Assembly (NCBI GenBank): GCA_965603825.1
Contig: CBFDEM010000036.1
Span: 744,001-808,000, forward strand
DNA from: Blepharisma stoltei ATCC 30299
Taxonomy: Eukaryota; Protista; Ciliophora
Reading direction: 5' to 3'
Length of the DNA stretch: 64,000 bases
The notes under the pieces are model-generated. The model had not been told where the DNA came from. It did no database searches and saw only the letters and a program-made list of their open reading frames with translations. The position numbers were made by a program, and so were the translations under genes. Below, piece by piece: positions 33,081 through 43,315 of the stretch (its first letter is position 1; every line of letters starts with the position of its first letter).

Positions 33081-34193
33081 TTAAACTGCAGTTGCAAATC
33101 CTAGTCTGGATTTTCCATAGTCAAAATGGGTATAGTAAGTTCTAATAAATAAGTCTCCTAAAATCACGACATTTTTAAACTTTTCTGGGAAGCCTGCACC
33201 AATCCAGCCATTTTCACAAATTGATTTTCCAGCTATTGACATTTCTATAACATAGTCTTCAGGTTTTAATACATAATCAATACCACCAATAGTTACAGTG
33301 ACATCAGGCAGGTCAGGAATATTAGAGCAATCAGTATTAATCTGTGGAATTTCGCTGTTGATTAGCTTAATAACTGAATTGTCGCCTACAAGTGCAGAGG
33401 TTCCTGAGTCTACAATTCCTCTAATATTTTGGACATCAATTTCTTTTCCATTCACACTAATTTTATCTATTTGAATTAGCCAATAGTCATCTTCTACCAA
33501 ATCTACATAATTCCAGTCCCCTTGATAGCATTTTTCATTATAGCCTCCAAGCGTTAAAATGCTTCCATCTTGATTATCCCCTTTTGTTAAATAAAACGCG
33601 AAGGAATCGTCTTCAAGCAATCCTAAGTCATACATAGTCTGATAAACTGGCTCAATATCATCAACAGAAATAGCTCTCCAGGCCATCCCTAAAATTCCAT
33701 CAAATTTAGCTAGTAAAAAGGAAGTACCACTTACGAGAATCATTTCTCCAAAACGGACCTTTGGGACTTCTATGCCTCCCCATGTAACTTTATCTTGAGA
33801 AAGGACACCTTCTACTTTTCCTGAGCCGTATTCTATTGTGATAGGGGTTCCATCAGATTCATATGTGTTTGATTGGTCTCGTCTGTATTTATTATGGAAA
33901 AGACAGGATGGAGATATACAAAATTTTGAAGGGACCCAGAGGTTGGAGGAACCTGTGTCAAAGACGACTTGAAATTCTTGTGGGGGTGTGCCAAGGTGGA
34001 TTGGGCCATAGTATTGAGCTGATTGGTAGTTCTTTAGTGGGACATCAACTTTTGAGCTAGAAAGTTTGGCAAGGACTTGAAGAGATTTGAAGTGGGCGTA
34101 TTTTTCTTCATTAGTTGAGTACAATGGTCGTAATGATATGTCGAGAGAAGACACTAAAACTCCGAGAAAAGAGGAAATGACTAAAAATATCAT
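33081..34193 (-). CDS. pepsin/cathepsin D-like aspartic protease (A1)
   Basis: Signal peptide; FDTGSSNLWV and VDSGTS catalytic motifs; FDGILG; ILGD.F. Confidence 0.95.
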   Translation of the reverse strand: MIFLVISSFLGVLVSSLDISLRPLYSTNEEKYAHFKSLQVLAKLSSSKVDVPLKNYQSAQYYGPIHLGTPPQEFQVVFDTGSSNLWVPSKFCISPSCLFHNKYRRDQSNTYESDGTPITIEYGSGKVEGVLSQDKVTWGGIEVPKVRFGEMILVSGTSFLLAKFDGILGMAWRAISVDDIEPVYQTMYDLGLLEDDSFAFYLTKGDNQDGSILTLGGYNEKCYQGDWNYVDLVEDDYWLIQIDKISVNGKEIDVQNIRGIVDSGTSALVGDNSVIKLINSEIPQINTDCSNIPDLPDVTVTIGGIDYVLKPEDYVIEMSIAGKSICENGWIGAGFPEKFKNVVILGDLFIRTYYTHFDYGKSRLGFATAV

Positions 34194-34469: not shown

Positions 34470-34982
34470 ATGGCGGGATTAATTGAGAAGTTTGTATGGG
34501 TTTATTTTTTAGCTATGATCATCTGTTGCCATCTATCTCTATTAATTTGTCAAGATGTAGTCTCAAACAAGCAATCTTGCCCCAGCAAGCCTCCAATTTA
34601 TGATTTAGTTGAAAAATATATTTTTTCAGTGCCTTTAATAAAGAAAAGTATTATTGCGATATATTCATCGCTGAAAATCAAAGACGATTTAATCGCATTA
34701 ATAGCATTAGCTGGAATTCCAGCACTAATAGCAGAAAATATGTTCATTGTCTACTTAGTAATCAGATACACTTTAAGCTTTATTTCAACCATCCTCAGCA
34801 ATCTTTTAAAAGGAATTGTCATCTCTTTAGTCCTCTCTCTACTAATATCCCTCCTATTTGGCGAAGAATTCACATCAGAAACATTCATTTCCACTATCTC
34901 AAGCAACCTCGACACCACCTGGCATACTCTTTCCTATTACGCCAACCTCGCATCAACTTTCTTCCTTCACTATAATAAATAA
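34470..34982 (+). CDS. hypothetical multi-pass membrane protein (170 aa)
   Basis: ATG follows AATAATAA; several hydrophobic segments; no family recognised. Confidence 0.6.
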   Translation: MAGLIEKFVWVYFLAMIICCHLSLLICQDVVSNKQSCPSKPPIYDLVEKYIFSVPLIKKSIIAIYSSLKIKDDLIALIALAGIPALIAENMFIVYLVIRYTLSFISTILSNLLKGIVISLVLSLLISLLFGEEFTSETFISTISSNLDTTWHTLSYYANLASTFFLHYNK

Positions 34983-35049
34983 CATTTTTAGTTTACTAAT
35001 CTCCGCAATTTCTTTCCTCCTTCATCCCAAATCTAACTTTATAATAAAG

Positions 35050-37338
35050 ATGGCCTCAGGACAGCCTACACCTGCGCCTCCTCAATTTTTTGTTGATTCC
35101 AAGAAAGGTGAAGTCAATGAGTTAAAAACTCTCATCAAAGGTATCATGACTGAAAGAGACGTAAAAAAGAGACGTGAAGCAATTAAAAAGGTTATTGCCT
35201 ATATGACATTGGGTGTAGATGTATCCAAACTTTTTACTGATATGGTTCTTATCTCTTCCACAAACGACATTGTGCAGAAAAAGATGATTTATCTTTATCT
35301 TGTAACCTATGTAGAAGCTAACCAAGAACAAGCACTGATGGCTATCAACACATTTTTTAAAGACTGCAAAAGCACAAATCCAGACCCAAAAATCAGAGGA
35401 CTAGCTCTGAGGAACTTGTGCTCACTAAGATTTCCAGGGGCTATTGAATATATTCAAAGTGCAGTACAAGAAGGGCTTATGGACCCTGATCCTTATGTAA
35501 AACGAACAGCGATAATGGGCCTAGTCAAGCTTTTCCGCTACGCAAAGGACTTGGAAATTGATCCTTCATTCATAAACACTGTTTATGAGCTTATAAGAGA
35601 TCCAGACCCTACTGTGTCTGCTAATGCTATTATAGCGCTAAATGAAGTCCTTGAAAATGAAGGAGGAATTGCTATTAACAGAAGAATGGTGATTTATTTG
35701 CTGAATAGGATCCACCAATATACAGAGTTTGGCCAGAGCATTATTTTTGATGTGGTGTCAAAATACCAGCCGATAGATGATAATGAAAAGATTGATATTC
35801 TGAATATTTTAGAAGAAAGGCTCAAGCATGCATCCAGTAGTGTTGTCCTTGGATGTATTAAGGTGTTTTTGAATTTAACTAAAGATAGTCCGGTTTTGCT
35901 TAACCAAGTTTTTGGAAGAGTTCAAGCTCCTTTAGTCACTCTGTTTATAGGTGCAGAAGTAGCTGGGGCTTATGAGCTATCTTATTGTGTGCTTTCTCAT
36001 ATCCATTTACTGATAGCAAGAGGCGCTGCTGACGTGTTTGAAAGAGATTATAAAAACTTTTTCTGTAAATATGACGAGCCAACCTATATAAAATTCATAA
36101 AAATAGAAATATTGACAATGATTGCAACTGAAAATAATTTAAGTGATATTGTTAACGAGCTATGTGCATATGTTACAGACGTAAATATCGAAATGAGCAA
36201 GCAGTCAATTAAATCAATAGCTTTAATAGCTATGAAAGTTGAGGCAGCAAGCATAGCCATTATAAGACAGCTTATAAGTTTCTTAGGCTGTGGCATTGAT
36301 TATGTGGTTACTGGAACTCTTGTAGCTATGAAAGATTTATTAAGAAAATATAGAGATTTGAGTGACGAAATTATTTCACAGGTAGCAAGCTCATTAGAAG
36401 TAGTAAGTAATGATGAAGGAAAAGCTGCGATTATTTGGATGATTGGAGAGTTTGGGTATGAAATTGAAGACGCTCCTTATATTTTAGAAGGAATCATCAA
36501 TAGCTTTAACCCAAATGATAATCTGCAAGTTGCCCATGCTTTATTGACTTCTAGCGTTAAACTTTTCTTGAAGAGGCCTCCTGAAATGCATGCTGCTTTG
36601 GGTATTCTTATGAGGCAGATTTATAATGAATGCGATAACCCAGATTTGCACGATAGGGCAGGGTTTTACTATAAACTGTTAGAAAGTAATCCAGAAATGG
36701 CTTATGAAGTTGTAAACTGCGAAAAATACCCAATCAGCGTATTTTACGAAGATGAAAAATCGCAGACTATAGATAAATTATGCCAAGAATTCAACAGCTT
36801 AAGCGTAATATATCAAAAACCTACCAAAAAAGTAAAAAAACCTATGCCTGAGACCAACGAAAATGTAGATGAGCGTCAGATTGTCCCTTATACAAATAAT
36901 CAAGAAGACCAAGAATCTGATTTATTAAATCTTCATGAAGAAATCGAATCAGGCGGCTTTGATATTCAAGGAAAAGATGAGTATTTCTCACTACAAGTGT
37001 CACCATCTATGAGTAGTGAAGAGTACCAGAATTTATGGATGAATATTACAGAAGAATTTAAAGAGGAAAAACAATTATTAAGAATGGCCACAGTAGAACA
37101 GGTTGAAGAATTATTTGCAGAAAATTCTGTGAACTGTGTAGCATCAGGAAACCAAGATGGGGTTATGAAGTTTTATTTCTACGCAAAAGAAGCTAAAGGA
37201 GGAAACCCATTTTTAATTGAATTGGTTATGATAATTAGTAATGCAGAATTGTCTTTTACGTTGAAATCTCAAGATAGTTCACAAATACAAGACTTTTTAG
37301 AGATATTTTATCAGATATTGGCTCCATTAATAAGTTAG
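35050..37338 (+). CDS. AP4B1: adaptor complex beta subunit, probably AP-4 beta (762 aa)
   Basis: KKGEVNELK, KKVIAYMTLGVDVS, IRGLALRNLCSL, DLHDRAGFYY, short single C-terminal appendage. The real ATG is 35050. Confidence 0.85.
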   Translation: MASGQPTPAPPQFFVDSKKGEVNELKTLIKGIMTERDVKKRREAIKKVIAYMTLGVDVSKLFTDMVLISSTNDIVQKKMIYLYLVTYVEANQEQALMAINTFFKDCKSTNPDPKIRGLALRNLCSLRFPGAIEYIQSAVQEGLMDPDPYVKRTAIMGLVKLFRYAKDLEIDPSFINTVYELIRDPDPTVSANAIIALNEVLENEGGIAINRRMVIYLLNRIHQYTEFGQSIIFDVVSKYQPIDDNEKIDILNILEERLKHASSSVVLGCIKVFLNLTKDSPVLLNQVFGRVQAPLVTLFIGAEVAGAYELSYCVLSHIHLLIARGAADVFERDYKNFFCKYDEPTYIKFIKIEILTMIATENNLSDIVNELCAYVTDVNIEMSKQSIKSIALIAMKVEAASIAIIRQLISFLGCGIDYVVTGTLVAMKDLLRKYRDLSDEIISQVASSLEVVSNDEGKAAIIWMIGEFGYEIEDAPYILEGIINSFNPNDNLQVAHALLTSSVKLFLKRPPEMHAALGILMRQIYNECDNPDLHDRAGFYYKLLESNPEMAYEVVNCEKYPISVFYEDEKSQTIDKLCQEFNSLSVIYQKPTKKVKKPMPETNENVDERQIVPYTNNQEDQESDLLNLHEEIESGGFDIQGKDEYFSLQVSPSMSSEEYQNLWMNITEEFKEEKQLLRMATVEQVEELFAENSVNCVASGNQDGVMKFYFYAKEAKGGNPFLIELVMIISNAELSFTLKSQDSSQIQDFLEIFYQILAPLIS

Positions 37339-37491
37339 ATTCATGGTAATTTGAGTTATCTGTATTATTTGATATTATTTATTTCCATATTTATATGTCC
37401 TATACTTATATAGCATTCTTAAAATTTAAGAGTTACACAATGCATCATTAATGATCTTATTTAATTCGAAAAAAATTGTCATATTATAAAA

Positions 37492-39999
37492 ATGAGCCTC
37501 AAAGATGATAAAGACCAAGTTCTTCATCAAACTATTCTTGATGTTCATCCAGATCCCTATGCCACTTCTGCAGAAATGGGTGAAGTCCCAAAGTCTACTT
37601 TTGAGTCTAGATCGCCTGAAGGTGATTTACTAATATATCAGCCTTTTAAACTGCTAAAGCAAACTGAAGATCGGTATAAAGATGATAAAATACTCAAAGG
37701 TCTACTAAATTGCGACGGTTTTGAATTTATTGCTCCTGATACAAAATTCAGACAATCCTTATTATATGATTTACTTTTTGATTATGAAAAAGACGAACAA
37801 ACTCGCTGTGAAATTTTAATTTTAGTAGCAGTAGATGTGCTCGATGTAAACACCTACAAAGAAACAATGCTAGGAATAACCGCAAATCTTGAATATTTTC
37901 GTCAAGTTGGCCTTCAAACAGAAAAAATCTGTTGTATTGTTATAATTGATGGGATGGAAAATTTTATGAGAACTTATAAGAATCAATGTGACTATTTTAA
38001 GCAATTTTTTGATCAAGATCTTATTAAAGATTTTTTTCATGTAGAAGATTTAAGAGATTGCAAAGTTAATGGAGGGAATTCTGACGATGATCTGCTCCAT
38101 TGTTTCATGAAAAATGCTATTTTTGATAATTCAAATATAAAACTTCAAATGGTTTTTGCAATAAAACAAGAGCGCAGCTTGAAGCTAAACACCCATTTAT
38201 GATTCTTTGGAGGATTCTGCCAGATGATTAACCCAGGCTATGTTATGTTGCTAGAAGCAGGGACAAGGCCTATGCCTAAAGCGCTATTTTATTTATATGA
38301 AGCTTTAAGAATTGATGACCATTTAGCAGGCTGTTGTGGAGAGCTTAAAGTTGAAGATAAAACCTACTGAAACCTCGCCTTAGGAGCCCAAGCTGCTGAA
38401 TATAAATTTAACCATATTTTTAACAAATCTTTTGAGAGTTTAACAGGCTATGTTTCCGAAATGCCTAGTTCTTTTAGTGCTTATCAATGAAACGCTCTCC
38501 AAGGCGACCCTCTTTGAAAATACTATTTCAAGCCTTTTACCCAGCCTGAAAAAATGACTCCATACCAAGCAAGTATTTATTCTTATGAAAGCGAAGTTTT
38601 GACTCTTGCACTTGTGGCTAAACATAAGTGCAATTATACATTAAGGTATGTTAAAAGGGCTACAGCAAAAACTACAGTCCCTACGTCAATTATTGATCTT
38701 ATGATACAAAGAAGATGCTGGATTAATTGGAGATGGCACTTATTGGTTGATCTATTCAAAACTTTTGACTTGATTTCTAAGTCAAAACATGAAGGCTTTA
38801 GATCGTTAGCACTTAGATTTAAAGTTCTTGTGTACTTTTTAGATACTTTATGTATATGGTTTTCTGTGGCTGGGCTATATATGGCATTTGCATATTGTCT
38901 TAGGCAAACTTATAGAGATGAATCAAGAGAAAGTAATATATATGGATGAGGAAATTATGTTATATTGCTTTACATTTTTCAAATAATTGTGATTTTTTCA
39001 CTGTCGTTGTCTGCAAGCATTGATAGACTGAAAGGAGAGTTTAAAATATTATCATCAATACAAGGAGCTTTTATAATATTTTTCATTTCTCTGCAAATAA
39101 AAATAATTTTGAATGGAGATCCATACACTGAGTGAAAAATAGGGTTTACACTGATAATACTTGCAGGGGTGCTGCTTAATGTAATATTGCATTGCTCGGT
39201 TTTTGAGATCGCCAAAGGTATAGCACATTTAACATTCCTTAGCAGCTCCTACATAAATATATTTTTAATAAATGCAATTTGCAATACTCAAGAAAATTCA
39301 TTAGTCCCTATAAACTTAAAAATTGACGAAGAGCAAGCTTCTGATTATTTTATGTACCGAACCAAATGCACATTAGTATGGGCTTTAAGCAATGCTACTC
39401 TGGCATATTTTTTAAACCTATTTGATCTACAGCATAACACTGAAGAATATTGATTATTGTATTTAATGGGTATAATTGGTGCAGTTTTATTAGCTGTGCG
39501 AATTCTTGCAGCATTTATTTATATTTTAAATGAATATTTTACAAGCTGTTTCTGTAAAAAAAATATAAGTATTGATGAAAATTATCGTCCAATCCAAGTT
39601 AAAAGAGTAAGATACTCGAAAAAAAATCCAGAACGTATTGAAAAAGACATTATTATAGATGAAATTGGTTTTAATCCTGAAAGAATTTGTAATGATAAAG
39701 ATCAAGAATATATCATGAAATTGAACAACCTTAATGCTGGGAAATTTTCTTTAAGTACAAGCAAAGCACAAGAGTTGTCTTTATTGGATGAAAGCTATAA
39801 AAGATATGGGGACATTAATGGGGATTATATAAGGTCTATTAGAAGAAGAAAAGGGCTGAGCGTTAATCAAGTATCAAAAATAACAAAAATTGATAAATAT
39901 AGGCTGAAAATTATTGAAAATAACATCGATAAGCCTACTCCTGAAGAAGCAGCAATTTTAAGGTACTATATTAATAATGAAAATACTCAAGAGCCATAA
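37492..39999 (+). CDS. chitin-synthase-like (GT2) membrane protein with degenerate active site and C-terminal XRE-type HTH (835 aa)
   Basis: One frame with 7 TGA (38200, 38368, 38488, 38515, 38947, 39133, 39451). IIDG, KLNTHL(W)FF, GTRP, GCCGEL, AQAAEYK..FES..GYV..P..FSAY, QRRCW, TM block, then GDYIRSIRRRKGLSVNQVSKITKI..LKIIENN..P. Confidence 0.88.
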
Positions 40000-40238
40000 T
40001 ATCAATTATGAGAGATTTACAAGCAATTTAATAAATTAAAACAATTTTTTAAAGTGTGAAGTTCTACTAAAAGCATATGACAAAAATGGATTAATAAATT
40101 AAAAAATCACCAATATTTAATCGAAAACCTTTTCTATTTGTATTTATTTTTATAATTTTAAAGGCAAATTTATTGATTTTCATTATATTGCGATTTTCTT
40201 ATTGACAATTTATTCCCCTAATCCAGAAAAATATAAAA

Positions 40239-40874
40239 ATGAAAACTAATGTTCAAGCCGAAGCCTATTTTCCAGGTGTTACACTCCCTCCACAGCCTTT
40301 ACGATCTCACCAAACGCACTATAAAGCCCTAATGTCTCGTCTGTACTATTCCTCAGCTTGTAAAATATTCTATACAATTATGATAATTTTGACGACAACA
40401 TGCATAATCTGGACTCTCCTAAACACCGGAACGTATCCGATAGAAGGATGATTTGTCGCCCTTGAAGTCATTTTAATTGTTCTGCTTACAGCAGAGCTGA
40501 TTTTCAGGGTTTTCATGCAAGGGCTTAAAATTTTTATAAAAGATTTTGAAAACATTATTGATATCTTTGTAGCGCTTATAAGCATCGCAGGTGTTTTCGT
40601 TGGGTTTGAACTCCACGATGAGCTTGCCGATATGGAAGAATCCCTTTCAATGTTTATTCTATTGCTAAGAACATCTACGAATTATCTAAGATTAGCGATA
40701 TTTGTCAAGAATATGAGAAATACAGCAGTAAGCGAGATAAGTCTGACCCATATAAGCCCATCAAAAAGCTCAGAAAAAATCGAAATGAATAAGCCAGTGT
40801 CAAAGTATATCATGGAACGAAAAAATTCAAAAGAATTTTCGACCCTTTCCGATGAAATTTCTATCGAAGATTAA
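40239..40874 (+). CDS. stand-alone voltage-sensor-domain (4-TM) protein (211 aa)
   Basis: TGA 40449 read through. S2 LE.......ELIFR, S3 FENIIDIFV, S4 LLLRTSTNYLRLAIFVKNMR; no pore domain. Confidence 0.78.
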
Positions 40875-40930: not shown

Positions 40931-43315
40931 CTAGTATTGATTTTTTCGCTTCCTCCAGACCTGGAATGAGATGTAAAGAGTCTCGTCAAGATTTCGGTCG
41001 AAATACGAAAGTACTGCATTTAAACTTTCATTGACCTTTTGGAATCGATAAGCAGACATAGTTGGCTTGGCTGGAGATTTTGAGAGGAAACTGTCATCGT
41101 TGTGGACTAAATTGATATAGTCGTTTTTAAAATTACTTCGTAGGCTGTGCTCTAGCACACTCCCTTTAAAGACTGACATGTTTGTTATTGATTTTGTGAG
41201 TTGGATTCCTGAAGACACTTTTTTAGGGATTGAATTTCTAGGACTTTTAAAAGGGGTTTCTTCTCCAGGTTTCCTGATATTTCGCCACATATAAAAATAG
41301 AATGAAAATTTTTTCCTTAATGCAAATTCTATCACATTGATTGCAGATTGTTTGGCTTTGACAAAATCGACACATTTTCAAAGAAATCTCTCAAACCATC
41401 TGATGTTATTTTTCTTCACAATTCGAGCAACCCTTAATAAAGCTTTTTCTTTCGCTTCTGATGATTGCACAGGAATTTTCCTTCTCCATATGTTCCAAAC
41501 CCTCATCTTTATGTTTTTATAGTAAGGGATTAACCTGGTAAAAGCTCTATTCAAGACTTTGAATTTATGCGCGTTTATTGCGGATTCTCGTTTTTTCGCT
41601 AATTTATAGTTGCTGAACAATAGTTTCCTCTTTTTATTAACTAAATCTTCGAATATAGCTACAACTGTAATTGTTTTTAGTGAATCATACTCAGTCTTTT
41701 TATATATATGATTAACAGTTTCTTTCCAATGGCGTAAGCATACTCGTTGCCTATACCCAAAATCTTTTTTAATGTTTTTCATAAGAATTTTAAGCCCTTT
41801 TTCTAAGTTCTTTTTATGCATATAAAATGCTTTGATCACAGAAAACCCAGATTCAAGAGCATTTCGTCTTGAATAAGCCTTTGATTTAATTATGGCATCG
41901 CATAAAAAATCGATATTATCTGTTGAGTAAATTAAAAGGGTTTGGAAGGCTTCACTTCTGGTTCTTCTGTTTATATTGTCTTCAACTATATTTAGATGCT
42001 CAACAAGCTGCTTAGTATGTTTTATTACACGGGTTGAGGACCGAGATCGAGAGGCTCTGAGCTCTTTTAGATGTGAATGAATGTCGTCTAAACAAACCTG
42101 CAGGCTTTCTTTTGTGGAGTGTCTTTTATTTGATCTTGGAGGCTTTGCATCTCTATTTAGGATTTTTTGGAAATAGGGCTTTAGCTTTGCTCTGAATTGG
42201 TAGTCAAGATTTATGAGGGATTGCTCTTGAAGCTCTTCTAAGTTAGTATCTGAGCCGCTCATGTTGAGGGTGTCTTCTAGTACTAAAGACTCAATGTTTA
42301 AATTCCCAGCAGATCTTAGTGCTTTAAAACTCTCCTGTTTAACTTTCCTTGTTACCTTTAGCAATAGTACAGACAGTTTTACAATCCCATTTGAAAAGTT
42401 GCTTAACCCAGTTTTATACCTTGGGCTATCATGGAATCTGCTTGAAAAAGACGAGGACCCTGTCATATTTCCAGACGACAAAGGATTTTCCATCGAACTC
42501 AGCATCGATCTTTTATGCCAATTTTCTAAATGGCTAACCCTTTCAGTTTCCACCACCACTGGCTGCTTCTCTTCAGACTTTCATTGTTCATTAGATCTAT
42601 TATACTCGTCAACTGTCTCAATAATAACTGGATTCTCTTCTCTGGAGTTCCTAAAATTTTTTTTATCTGAATTCTGATTTCTCGGTGAAGGTCTTATAGA
42701 AACTGGCAAACTTTCTGACATATGATTATCAAAGCCATGTATGATTTTCCCTTTCATCTTATTTGTTGTCCTTTGAGATGAGGCTGATCTATCAAATGAA
42801 GCTATATTTAGCTGATATGGGTTTGGTTTATTAAAAAAATAATTTTTTTCTTCTTCTTTTTTCATCAATTCAGTTTTAGTTTTCCATATGCGGAAATGCT
42901 TAGCCATAAATTCCACGATTCTGCCTACTAATAAAGCTGCTGAGTCTAACTTGTAGGATCTTAGTTTGGTTTTTTGAGGACTTGGACTTCTGAAGAGTTT
43001 TGGGCTAAGCAGATTTGGGCTCCCAATTCGAAATCGGGGAGGCGAATGGTGGTTTAAGCTTGATCGACCATTGCTAGGCATGGAATCGATGCTGAGAAAA
43101 GGTTTAAAAACGTTTACGCAGGGTTCTGTGCTTAAAACCTCCCCAACTTTGGGATCTATTTTATGAGATCAGTTGAAAAGGTAACTATGCACCCTTCTGC
43201 TGCGAGATTTTAAATCTAATGAACTTTTTGCTATTGCTGCTTGCTTATTTCGTTGTAATCTGTGCTGAAGCATTTCCCGCCTATATGCAGTCACACTATT
43301 TAGAAGATCTGCCAT
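40931..43315 (-). CDS. basic Ser/Pro-rich protein with Sfi1-like FxxW repeats (794 aa)
   Basis: ATG 43315; one frame through three TGA. FRIWK, LRHWK, WNIWR, FYMWR, FQVWR. Confidence 0.75.

Follow-up and report, generated by a model that had tools for sequence, protein, structure and literature searches.

Division-1 chitin synthases (CHS) of solved structure, Phytophthora sojae Chs1 (7wjm), Saccharomyces cerevisiae Chs1 (7xs6, 8k3*) and Candida albicans Chs2 (7stl), are active homodimers in which a GT-A glycosyltransferase (GT) domain is joined to a six-helix transmembrane (TM) channel with interface helices; they carry nine motifs, place their accessory parts at the N-terminus, and have no helix-turn-helix (HTH) domain. 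Motifs 1 to 4 (M1-M4) form the tub in which UDP-GlcNAc binds, EDR supplies the general base with its Asp, the donor diphosphate is bound by the third Arg of QRRRW, VLPGA is the channel gate, and SWG controls substrate entry (PMC12653383). Chitin builds the cyst walls and loricae of ciliates, which have many synthases to place and control; a survey of 86 ciliate CHS, those of Blepharisma stoltei included, describes single-exon heterotrich genes and class-specific motifs, and an HTH is absent from its text (PMC10946202). The gene considered here lies at positions 37492-39999 on the forward (+) strand of a 64,000-nucleotide stretch of B. stoltei DNA (the window, G000:C36:744001-808000), in a genome of 41.5 Mb and 64 contigs that was searched as a whole. 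It encodes a CHS paralog that has the GT-A domain and channel of the solved enzymes (Foldseek E ~1e-30, TM-score ~0.6), has an eroded catalytic site, and ends in an HTH of the XRE/Cro-C1 type. Taken as a whole, it is probably a transcribed and constrained dead CHS, a pseudoenzyme that would partner or regulate active, dimeric CHS and put its cytoplasmic tail to the same use as theirs.

Two more distant systems offer parallels. RodZ (HTH_25; 2wus chain R) likewise has a cytoplasmic, membrane-anchored XRE-type HTH within a wall-polysaccharide machine, and that HTH holds MreB (PMC9804626); RodZ differs in being bacterial and bitopic, with its HTH N-terminal and unfused to a synthase, and the likeness is to a possible working mode, not one of membership. 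Arabidopsis IRX9 is a GT-fold protein that is required in a polysaccharide synthase complex while its own activity is dispensable (PMC4132061), which resembles the role proposed below; it belongs to another GT family and another organism, and for the eroded CHS a role in a complex is something that we infer. Literature searches for a chitin synthase linked to an HTH domain found no paper, and the pairing of CHS with a cytoplasmic XRE-type HTH, seen in a subset of the heterotrich enzymes, is undescribed in searchable papers.

Reading frame, fold and catalytic motifs

The gene is a single exon of 835 codons closed by TAA. Its translation is a 100% match to the public B. stoltei protein P0079, which bears out the hidden frame of the preliminary description, a reading of the letters alone that had proposed an eroded chitin synthase fused to an XRE-type HTH. 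The frame holds seven internal stops, every one TGA (at 38200, 38368, 38488, 38515, 38947, 39133 and 39451, a span of 38200-39453). Because TGA codons 237, 333 and 342 sit on invariant or nearly invariant Trp columns of an alignment of 40 CHS, Stentor proteins included, the reading of UGA as Trp is shown directly for this gene. The 835-codon frame contains no TAA or TAG; 24-58 occur in each of the other five and ~51 in shuffled sequence, so that it is open far beyond chance. The protein was searched in the pieces between TGA codons, full-length searches used P0079, and scripts read TGA as Trp. In-frame 15-nt introns were considered as a source of the odd motifs described below and ruled out: contigs that cover the gene have no spliced joints, and heterotrich CHS genes are reported to be single-exon (PMC10946202).

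Descent from CHS is evident at several levels. The TGA-bounded pieces match Chitin_synth_1 (PF01644, 30.7 bits) and Chitin_synth_2 (PF03142, 28.4 bits) above both cut-offs, and in a profile scan of the genome the gene scores 60.9 and 65.4 bits, respectively; among ~15 CHS paralogs in B. stoltei it has the lowest score of the full-length Chitin_synth_1 matches. P0079 matches P. sojae Chs1 (7wjm) with an E-value of 3.5e-51, and S. cerevisiae Chs1 and C. albicans Chs2 are matched too. An AlphaFold2 (AF2) model of P0079 built on a 40-sequence alignment (mean pLDDT 79.7, pTM 0.76) is confident for the GT, membrane and C-terminal helical (777-828) domains, with the motif-9 loop (602-609) and a linker (704-772) disordered; the 20 best Foldseek matches of this model are all solved CHS (PsChs1, ScChs1 and CaChs2; E 1e-27 to 1e-32). 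By sequence descent and predicted fold, then, the eroded copy is a CHS (GT2, division 1), although not an active enzyme, and the division-1 scaffold with eroded catalysis of the preliminary description stands.

The GT-A domain comprises residues ~101-410 (37792-38721, +). It is followed by the membrane domain, residues 435-687 (38794-39552, +), in which eight long predicted helices match TM and interface helices of the solved CHS, the equivalents of TM5 and TM6 being residues 617-646 and 650-687. A linker of residues 686-778 (39547-39825, +), basic by the membrane and thereafter predicted to be disordered (pLDDT <50 at 704-772) and poorly conserved, leads to the HTH at residues 779-828 (39826-39975, +). 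SWG sits on a cytoplasmic loop that precedes TM5 and TM6 (PMC12653383); because both helices are present in the eroded CHS and the segment past TM6 is rich in Lys and Arg, the HTH should lie on the cytoplasmic face of the membrane.

Motif changes were scored by alignment to 13 paralogs, among which only the eroded copy has the full set; every change quoted in the preliminary description is present. In M1, part of the UDP-sugar binding tub (PMC12653383), AMYNE has become AVDVL (37828-37842, +). In M4 LLDVGT has become LLEAGT (38248-38265, +), and the VLPGA gate of M6 is EMPSS (38458-38472, +). LAEDR of M7 is replaced by SYESE (38581-38595, +), with the catalytic-base Asp now Ser367 and the Arg now Glu368. 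QRRRW of M8 is QRRCW (38707-38721, +), so that the third Arg, which contacts the diphosphate, is Cys409, and the WINGSW that follows is WINWRW. ETDVP is KTTVP, and at the position of M9 C(S/T)WG is NSL (39295-39303, +), in a loop that is modelled with low confidence. M2 (DG), M5 (Q..EY), part of M3 and Trp410 of M8 are retained. Across 121 columns conserved at 95% or more in the other 39 CHS, the eroded copy deviates at 37; the closely related P0002 deviates at 18 of 117, and the other 38 at 10 or fewer each. Because six of the nine motifs (M1, M4, M6, M7, M8 and M9, the catalytic Asp included) that serve UDP-GlcNAc binding, transfer and gating have been lost, the eroded copy is almost certainly unable to make chitin.

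The C-terminal helix-turn-helix and its distribution

The tail sequence that the preliminary description had assigned to an XRE-type HTH is found at 39820-39975, and profiles and predicted folds concur with the assignment. The Pfam scores of the eroded copy's own tail lie near the cut-offs: HTH_25 passes (26.3; cut-off 24.6), HTH_19 (27.2; 30.2) and HTH_3 (17.5; 23) do not. Among 23 CHS tails of the same kind, HTH_3 and HTH_25 each match 21, with a best HTH_3 E-value of 3e-12. A profile of these 23 tails, run against the PDB, retrieves XRE domains (best 7t5u, E 2e-7; also DdrO, CylR2 and SinR), together with archaeal MBF1 (2mez, E 1.1e-5), RodZ (2wus_R, E 1.3e-5) and human EDF1 (1x57, E 1e-3). 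Eukaryotes have few XRE-type HTHs other than MBF1, the best-known one; MBF1 is soluble and binds co-activators and the ribosome, unlike the membrane-borne tail of these CHS.

Modelled by AF2, residues 765-835 form four helices (13-22, 27-34, 38-45 and 53-64 of the 71-residue piece) with a pLDDT of 89-95 in the core, and the top Foldseek matches of the model are all XRE HTHs (HigA2, CylR2, SinR, DdrO and P22 c2), with rmsd 0.8-1.3 Å over ~50 residues and probability 1.00; the Foldseek E-values are weak (0.07 or above), as the query is short, and the reading is taken from the uniformly XRE list, the rmsd and the probability. The HTH_3 match covers positions 1-42 of 55, and four helices are modelled where the full domain has five. 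On profile and modelled structure, the XRE-type HTH fold of the C-terminal segment is genuine. Its net charge is +7 in the eroded copy and ranges from -4 to +8 across the CHS family, a spread that gives no sign of a uniform surface for DNA binding.

The tail is by no means private to the eroded gene. A profile search of the B. stoltei genome finds it in exactly five places, each the 3' end of a CHS gene, and finds no copy of the domain outside CHS genes: the eroded gene, C36:491426-493957 (C36_491), C56:825305-827893 (P0002, also C56_825), C20:336634-339069 and C56:72915-75293 (P0005). Of the other four, P0002 is partly eroded and the remaining three are intact in every scored motif. In all, the tail ends 23 of 120 CHS homologs, including SteCoe_24170, SteCoe_10593 and SteCoe_6072 of Stentor coeruleus (P0006, P0009 and P0012) and ~14 metagenomic CHS. 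The Stentor proteins are CHS of ~800 amino acids with the same XRE-type HTH after TM6; they differ from P0079, to which they are 34-35% identical, in that their motifs are intact (MYNE, CGEI, AEDR, QRRRW, CTWG). Outside Blepharisma the full-length tail-bearing CHS retain MYNE, CGEI, QRRRW and (S/T)WG, the exception being a shorter 645-residue record in which MYNE was not found, and AEDR is kept in all except P0038.

In a tree of 69 proteins, 15 tail-bearing CHS make up an all-HTH clade (SH-aLRT 100); the eroded gene clusters with C36_491 and P0002 (97), nested in a Blepharisma clade (99). Both of these paralogs, on the minus strand at C36:491426-493957(-) and C56:825305-827893(-), resemble it in length, single exon and tail signature, and their HTHs are 62% and 56% identical, respectively, to that of the eroded copy. 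C36_491 keeps all nine motifs. P0002 (G000:C56:825305-827893 (-) = L042:2805-5393) is half eroded: it retains EDR, QRRRW and the HTH tail, and is without YNE, TDVP and SWG, with MQDE for MYNE, LMDAGT for LLDVGT, GVEIP for ETDVP and SWE for SWG. Relative to P0002, the eroded copy has additionally lost the catalytic Asp, and its unique changes in the GT and TM domains are roughly double. In public annotation P0002 has a precomputed PF12844 match, which makes the CHS-HTH architecture visible there.

Because motif-intact Blepharisma and Stentor CHS carry the same tail, the HTH fusion is, by its distribution over sequences, ancestral to a heterotrich CHS subfamily and did not arise with the dead copy. 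The preliminary description had proposed a regulatory innovation, and had itself named a tail shared with active ciliate CHS as the observation that would make it ancestral. The CHS-HTH paralogs that it anticipated do exist; most have EDR intact (three of four motif-intact in B. stoltei, and the Stentor proteins intact), and the idea of a membrane-tethered regulator tied to the non-catalytic form loses its footing with an HTH domain common to motif-intact enzymes.

A tail-only word search (P0019 residues 730-791), with E-values scaled to 5.8 billion sequences, gave two matches only. When the tail profile was run against 1.84 billion representatives, the top 150 were dominated by tandem-HTH proteins with summed scores and are uninformative on CHS; the best of these matches (P0125-P0139 and others) are proteins of 250-2000 amino acids with 3-11 tandem XRE-type HTH repeats.

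Constraint, transcription and possible role

The eroded gene has evolved fast: at 1.42 substitutions per site, its end branch in the 69-protein tree exceeds the median of 0.21. The acceleration is unevenly distributed. With C36_491 as reference, the eroded copy has 62 unique changes in the GT domain to 30 in its sister C56_825 (p 0.001) and, for the TM domain, 63 to 36 (p 0.009); in the HTH the two have 8 and 11, respectively. With C4_547 as reference, unique changes in the eroded copy and in C36_491 number 86 vs 25 (GT) and 83 vs 15 (TM). The 62% identity of the eroded copy's HTH to that of intact C36_491 is no lower than the 56% that the two other clade members have between them. Fast evolution is thus limited to the GT and membrane domains, and the HTH has changed at a rate no higher than in its paralogs. 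Because of these domain-specific rates and the 62% HTH identity, constraint on catalysis and on the channel is judged to have been relaxed or redirected, and that on the tail to have been maintained.

Nei-Gojobori dN/dS, calculated with UGA as Trp, encountered saturated synonymous sites (pS 0.62-0.92) and gave no usable omega; it was replaced by comparison of nonsynonymous (pN) with synonymous (pS) proportions, relative-rate counts and an open-frame test. For the HTH pN is 0.26 and pS 0.83; for the GT core pN is 0.30; pS is 0.7-0.8. When the sister gene was made to drift neutrally in simulation to only 70% identity, at least six stops arose in 200 of 200 runs. Judged by these comparisons, the eroded gene is under constraint and is not decaying.

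Logan contigs from four runs of one study tile the whole reading frame and tail (37489-40006, strand not given) without joints, and leave the intergenic gaps 37350-37488 and 40007-40243 uncovered in all four runs. Their gene-bounded coverage argues for RNA, the label guessed for the runs by the tool. Single contigs connect TM6 to the HTH (e.g., 39482-39963 and 39516-39998), as the preliminary description would have it, and the gene appears to be transcribed as one unit, tail included. It is assembled in pieces of 160-850 nt, and the adjoining beta-adaptin gene as one 2.2-kb contig, which suggests that the eroded gene is expressed below the beta-adaptin level. At 38391 (run X3, low depth) and at 40301 (run X4) the window has A where a single contig has G; the mismatches could be allelic, errors or RNA editing, among which contigs cannot discriminate.

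The hallmarks of a pseudoenzyme are found together in this gene: the fold is kept, catalytic residues are lost, the frame is open against neutral simulation, rates differ by domain and RNA-like contigs cover the frame, with the RNA status of the runs guessed and no ortholog found. With high confidence, the gene encodes a dead enzyme that has the CHS fold and a conserved HTH. What it does is a more tentative matter, and a partner or docking mechanism is put forward here at somewhat less than even chances. Because solved division-1 CHS are dimers, a partner role is the likeliest: the eroded CHS would pair with active CHS paralogs as a non-catalytic partner or regulator, or alternatively compete with them for the docking target of the tail. 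Partnership with an active synthase is also the most plausible part of the earlier inference to survive. The HTH, on its ~90-residue disordered cytoplasmic linker, would be the docking module of the whole HTH-bearing CHS subfamily, in the manner of RodZ and MreB; docking is the simplest reading of the tail, a reader of DNA the less likely one. Constraint on the tail persists after catalysis has been lost, which indicates that the tail has a job of its own. The dead paralog presents a natural case of separation of function, in which catalysis has been lost and the tail is kept under constraint as tight as that in the intact enzyme, and offers a clean handle on the tail's binding partner.

Several points weigh against this reading. 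No ortholog of P0079 emerged among 5.8 billion proteins, in which the best non-self match is 39% identical, and this deprives the dead state of support from other species. Branch-specific dN/dS is not obtainable with synonymous sites saturated; the contigs come from runs whose RNA status is a guess, and give no strand, level or transcript ends. The heterodimer idea is drawn solely from the homodimers of distant CHS: conservation of TM5 (53% to C36_491) was considered as evidence for it and discarded as unspecific, that helix being conserved family-wide. The HTH of the eroded copy, finally, is strongly basic, which would also be suited to binding nucleic acid.

The long end branch and the missing ortholog, together with contigs that are short and fragmented beside the whole adaptin contig and the redundancy that ~15 CHS paralogs make plausible, could also describe a redundant duplicate that is drifting toward a pseudogene, weakly transcribed, with its frame and tail as leftovers. 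Such drift is nonetheless unlikely in the face of 835 codons without TAA, TAG or frameshift where every simulated run acquired stops, an acceleration that is domain-specific and spares the HTH, pN well under pS in both GT and HTH, and confident AF2 prediction of GT, TM and HTH alike. Neofunctionalization, in which the altered site (ESE, QRRCW) would carry out another reaction or the channel would move the polymer of another subunit, has the lowest probability of all: the channel-entrance elements Q..EY and Trp410 of motif 8 do remain, the membrane-domain prediction is highly confident and two glutamates flank the lost Asp, but the six motifs changed together, UDP-binding ones included, no structured part has changed faster than the membrane domain (the 83 vs 15 unique changes given above), and the new motif set is unseen in relatives retrieved by homolog search with P0079.

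The preliminary description had proposed a membrane-tethered sensor or transcription regulator; in the form weighed here, a dead CHS would sense UDP-GlcNAc or chitin and its HTH, once freed, would act on macronuclear DNA. In keeping with it, the tail has a basic surface on a true XRE-type HTH fold, the cytoplasmic linker is long, disordered and potentially cleavable, and constraint on the HTH outlasts catalysis. However, with M1, M4 and the third Arg of QRRRW lost, sensing of UDP-GlcNAc is disfavoured, and that function was rejected on this ground; the tail, being common to motif-intact Blepharisma and Stentor CHS, is untied to catalytic loss; its charge varies in the family from acidic to basic; only four helices are modelled and HTH_3 is matched in part; membrane-anchored XRE HTHs can bind protein, as RodZ does (2wus_R match; PMC9804626); and cleavage, nuclear import and DNA binding of a freed tail are unsupported. 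We regard the sensor as very unlikely. A related conjecture, that heterotrich CHS tails in general, and that of the dead copy especially, are releasable DNA-binding modules that inform the macronucleus of the state of the cortex or cyst wall, is a long shot, of which a RodZ-like link between synthase and cortical cytoskeleton would be the milder but still new form; if it were true, a polysaccharide synthase family would double as membrane-tethered transcription factors.

Other chitin synthase loci and neighbouring genes

Immediately upstream of the eroded gene lies that for beta-adaptin at 34858-37338 (+) (Adaptin_N E 2e-87, with a beta2-appendage domain), preceded by a eukaryotic aspartyl protease at 33081-34193 (-) (E 9e-88). 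The downstream open reading frames 40515-40874 (+) and 41378-42559 (-) gave no match in a Pfam search.

The CHS paralogs of B. stoltei are diverse in other ways. An inverted array of three CHS genes at G000:C20:336634-344194 (L034, L035) has a recognizable HTH tail on the first only; C20_341 has a faint, non-significant tail remnant (E ~0.1-0.2), which suggests decay of the tail in active CHS copies. The CHS at G000:C4:547007-550126 (-) (L040) has a frame of 1040 codons, of which the public protein P0004 (687 residues) spans only part, with a long and different C-terminal extension in place of the HTH. The copy in the region of G000:C35:606148-606633 (L038:2809-5295) is in three frame pieces (309, 242 and 134 residues), and may be a frameshifted pseudogene or contain an intron of a length that is not a multiple of three.

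Three members form a very divergent clade on a stem branch of 2.09: G000:C18:61762-63954 (+), C4:540776-542908 (-) and C34:425518-427575 (+) (L039, L041 and L043), the last ~3.4 kb from its contig end. They are without YNE, SWG and HTH, have LS(E/V)DR for LAEDR and, in two members, TRRKW. A near-identical tandem pair of CHS genes (788 and 791 codons) at G000:C62:21141-26476 (L044:2641-7976), also without the HTH, shares a long branch.

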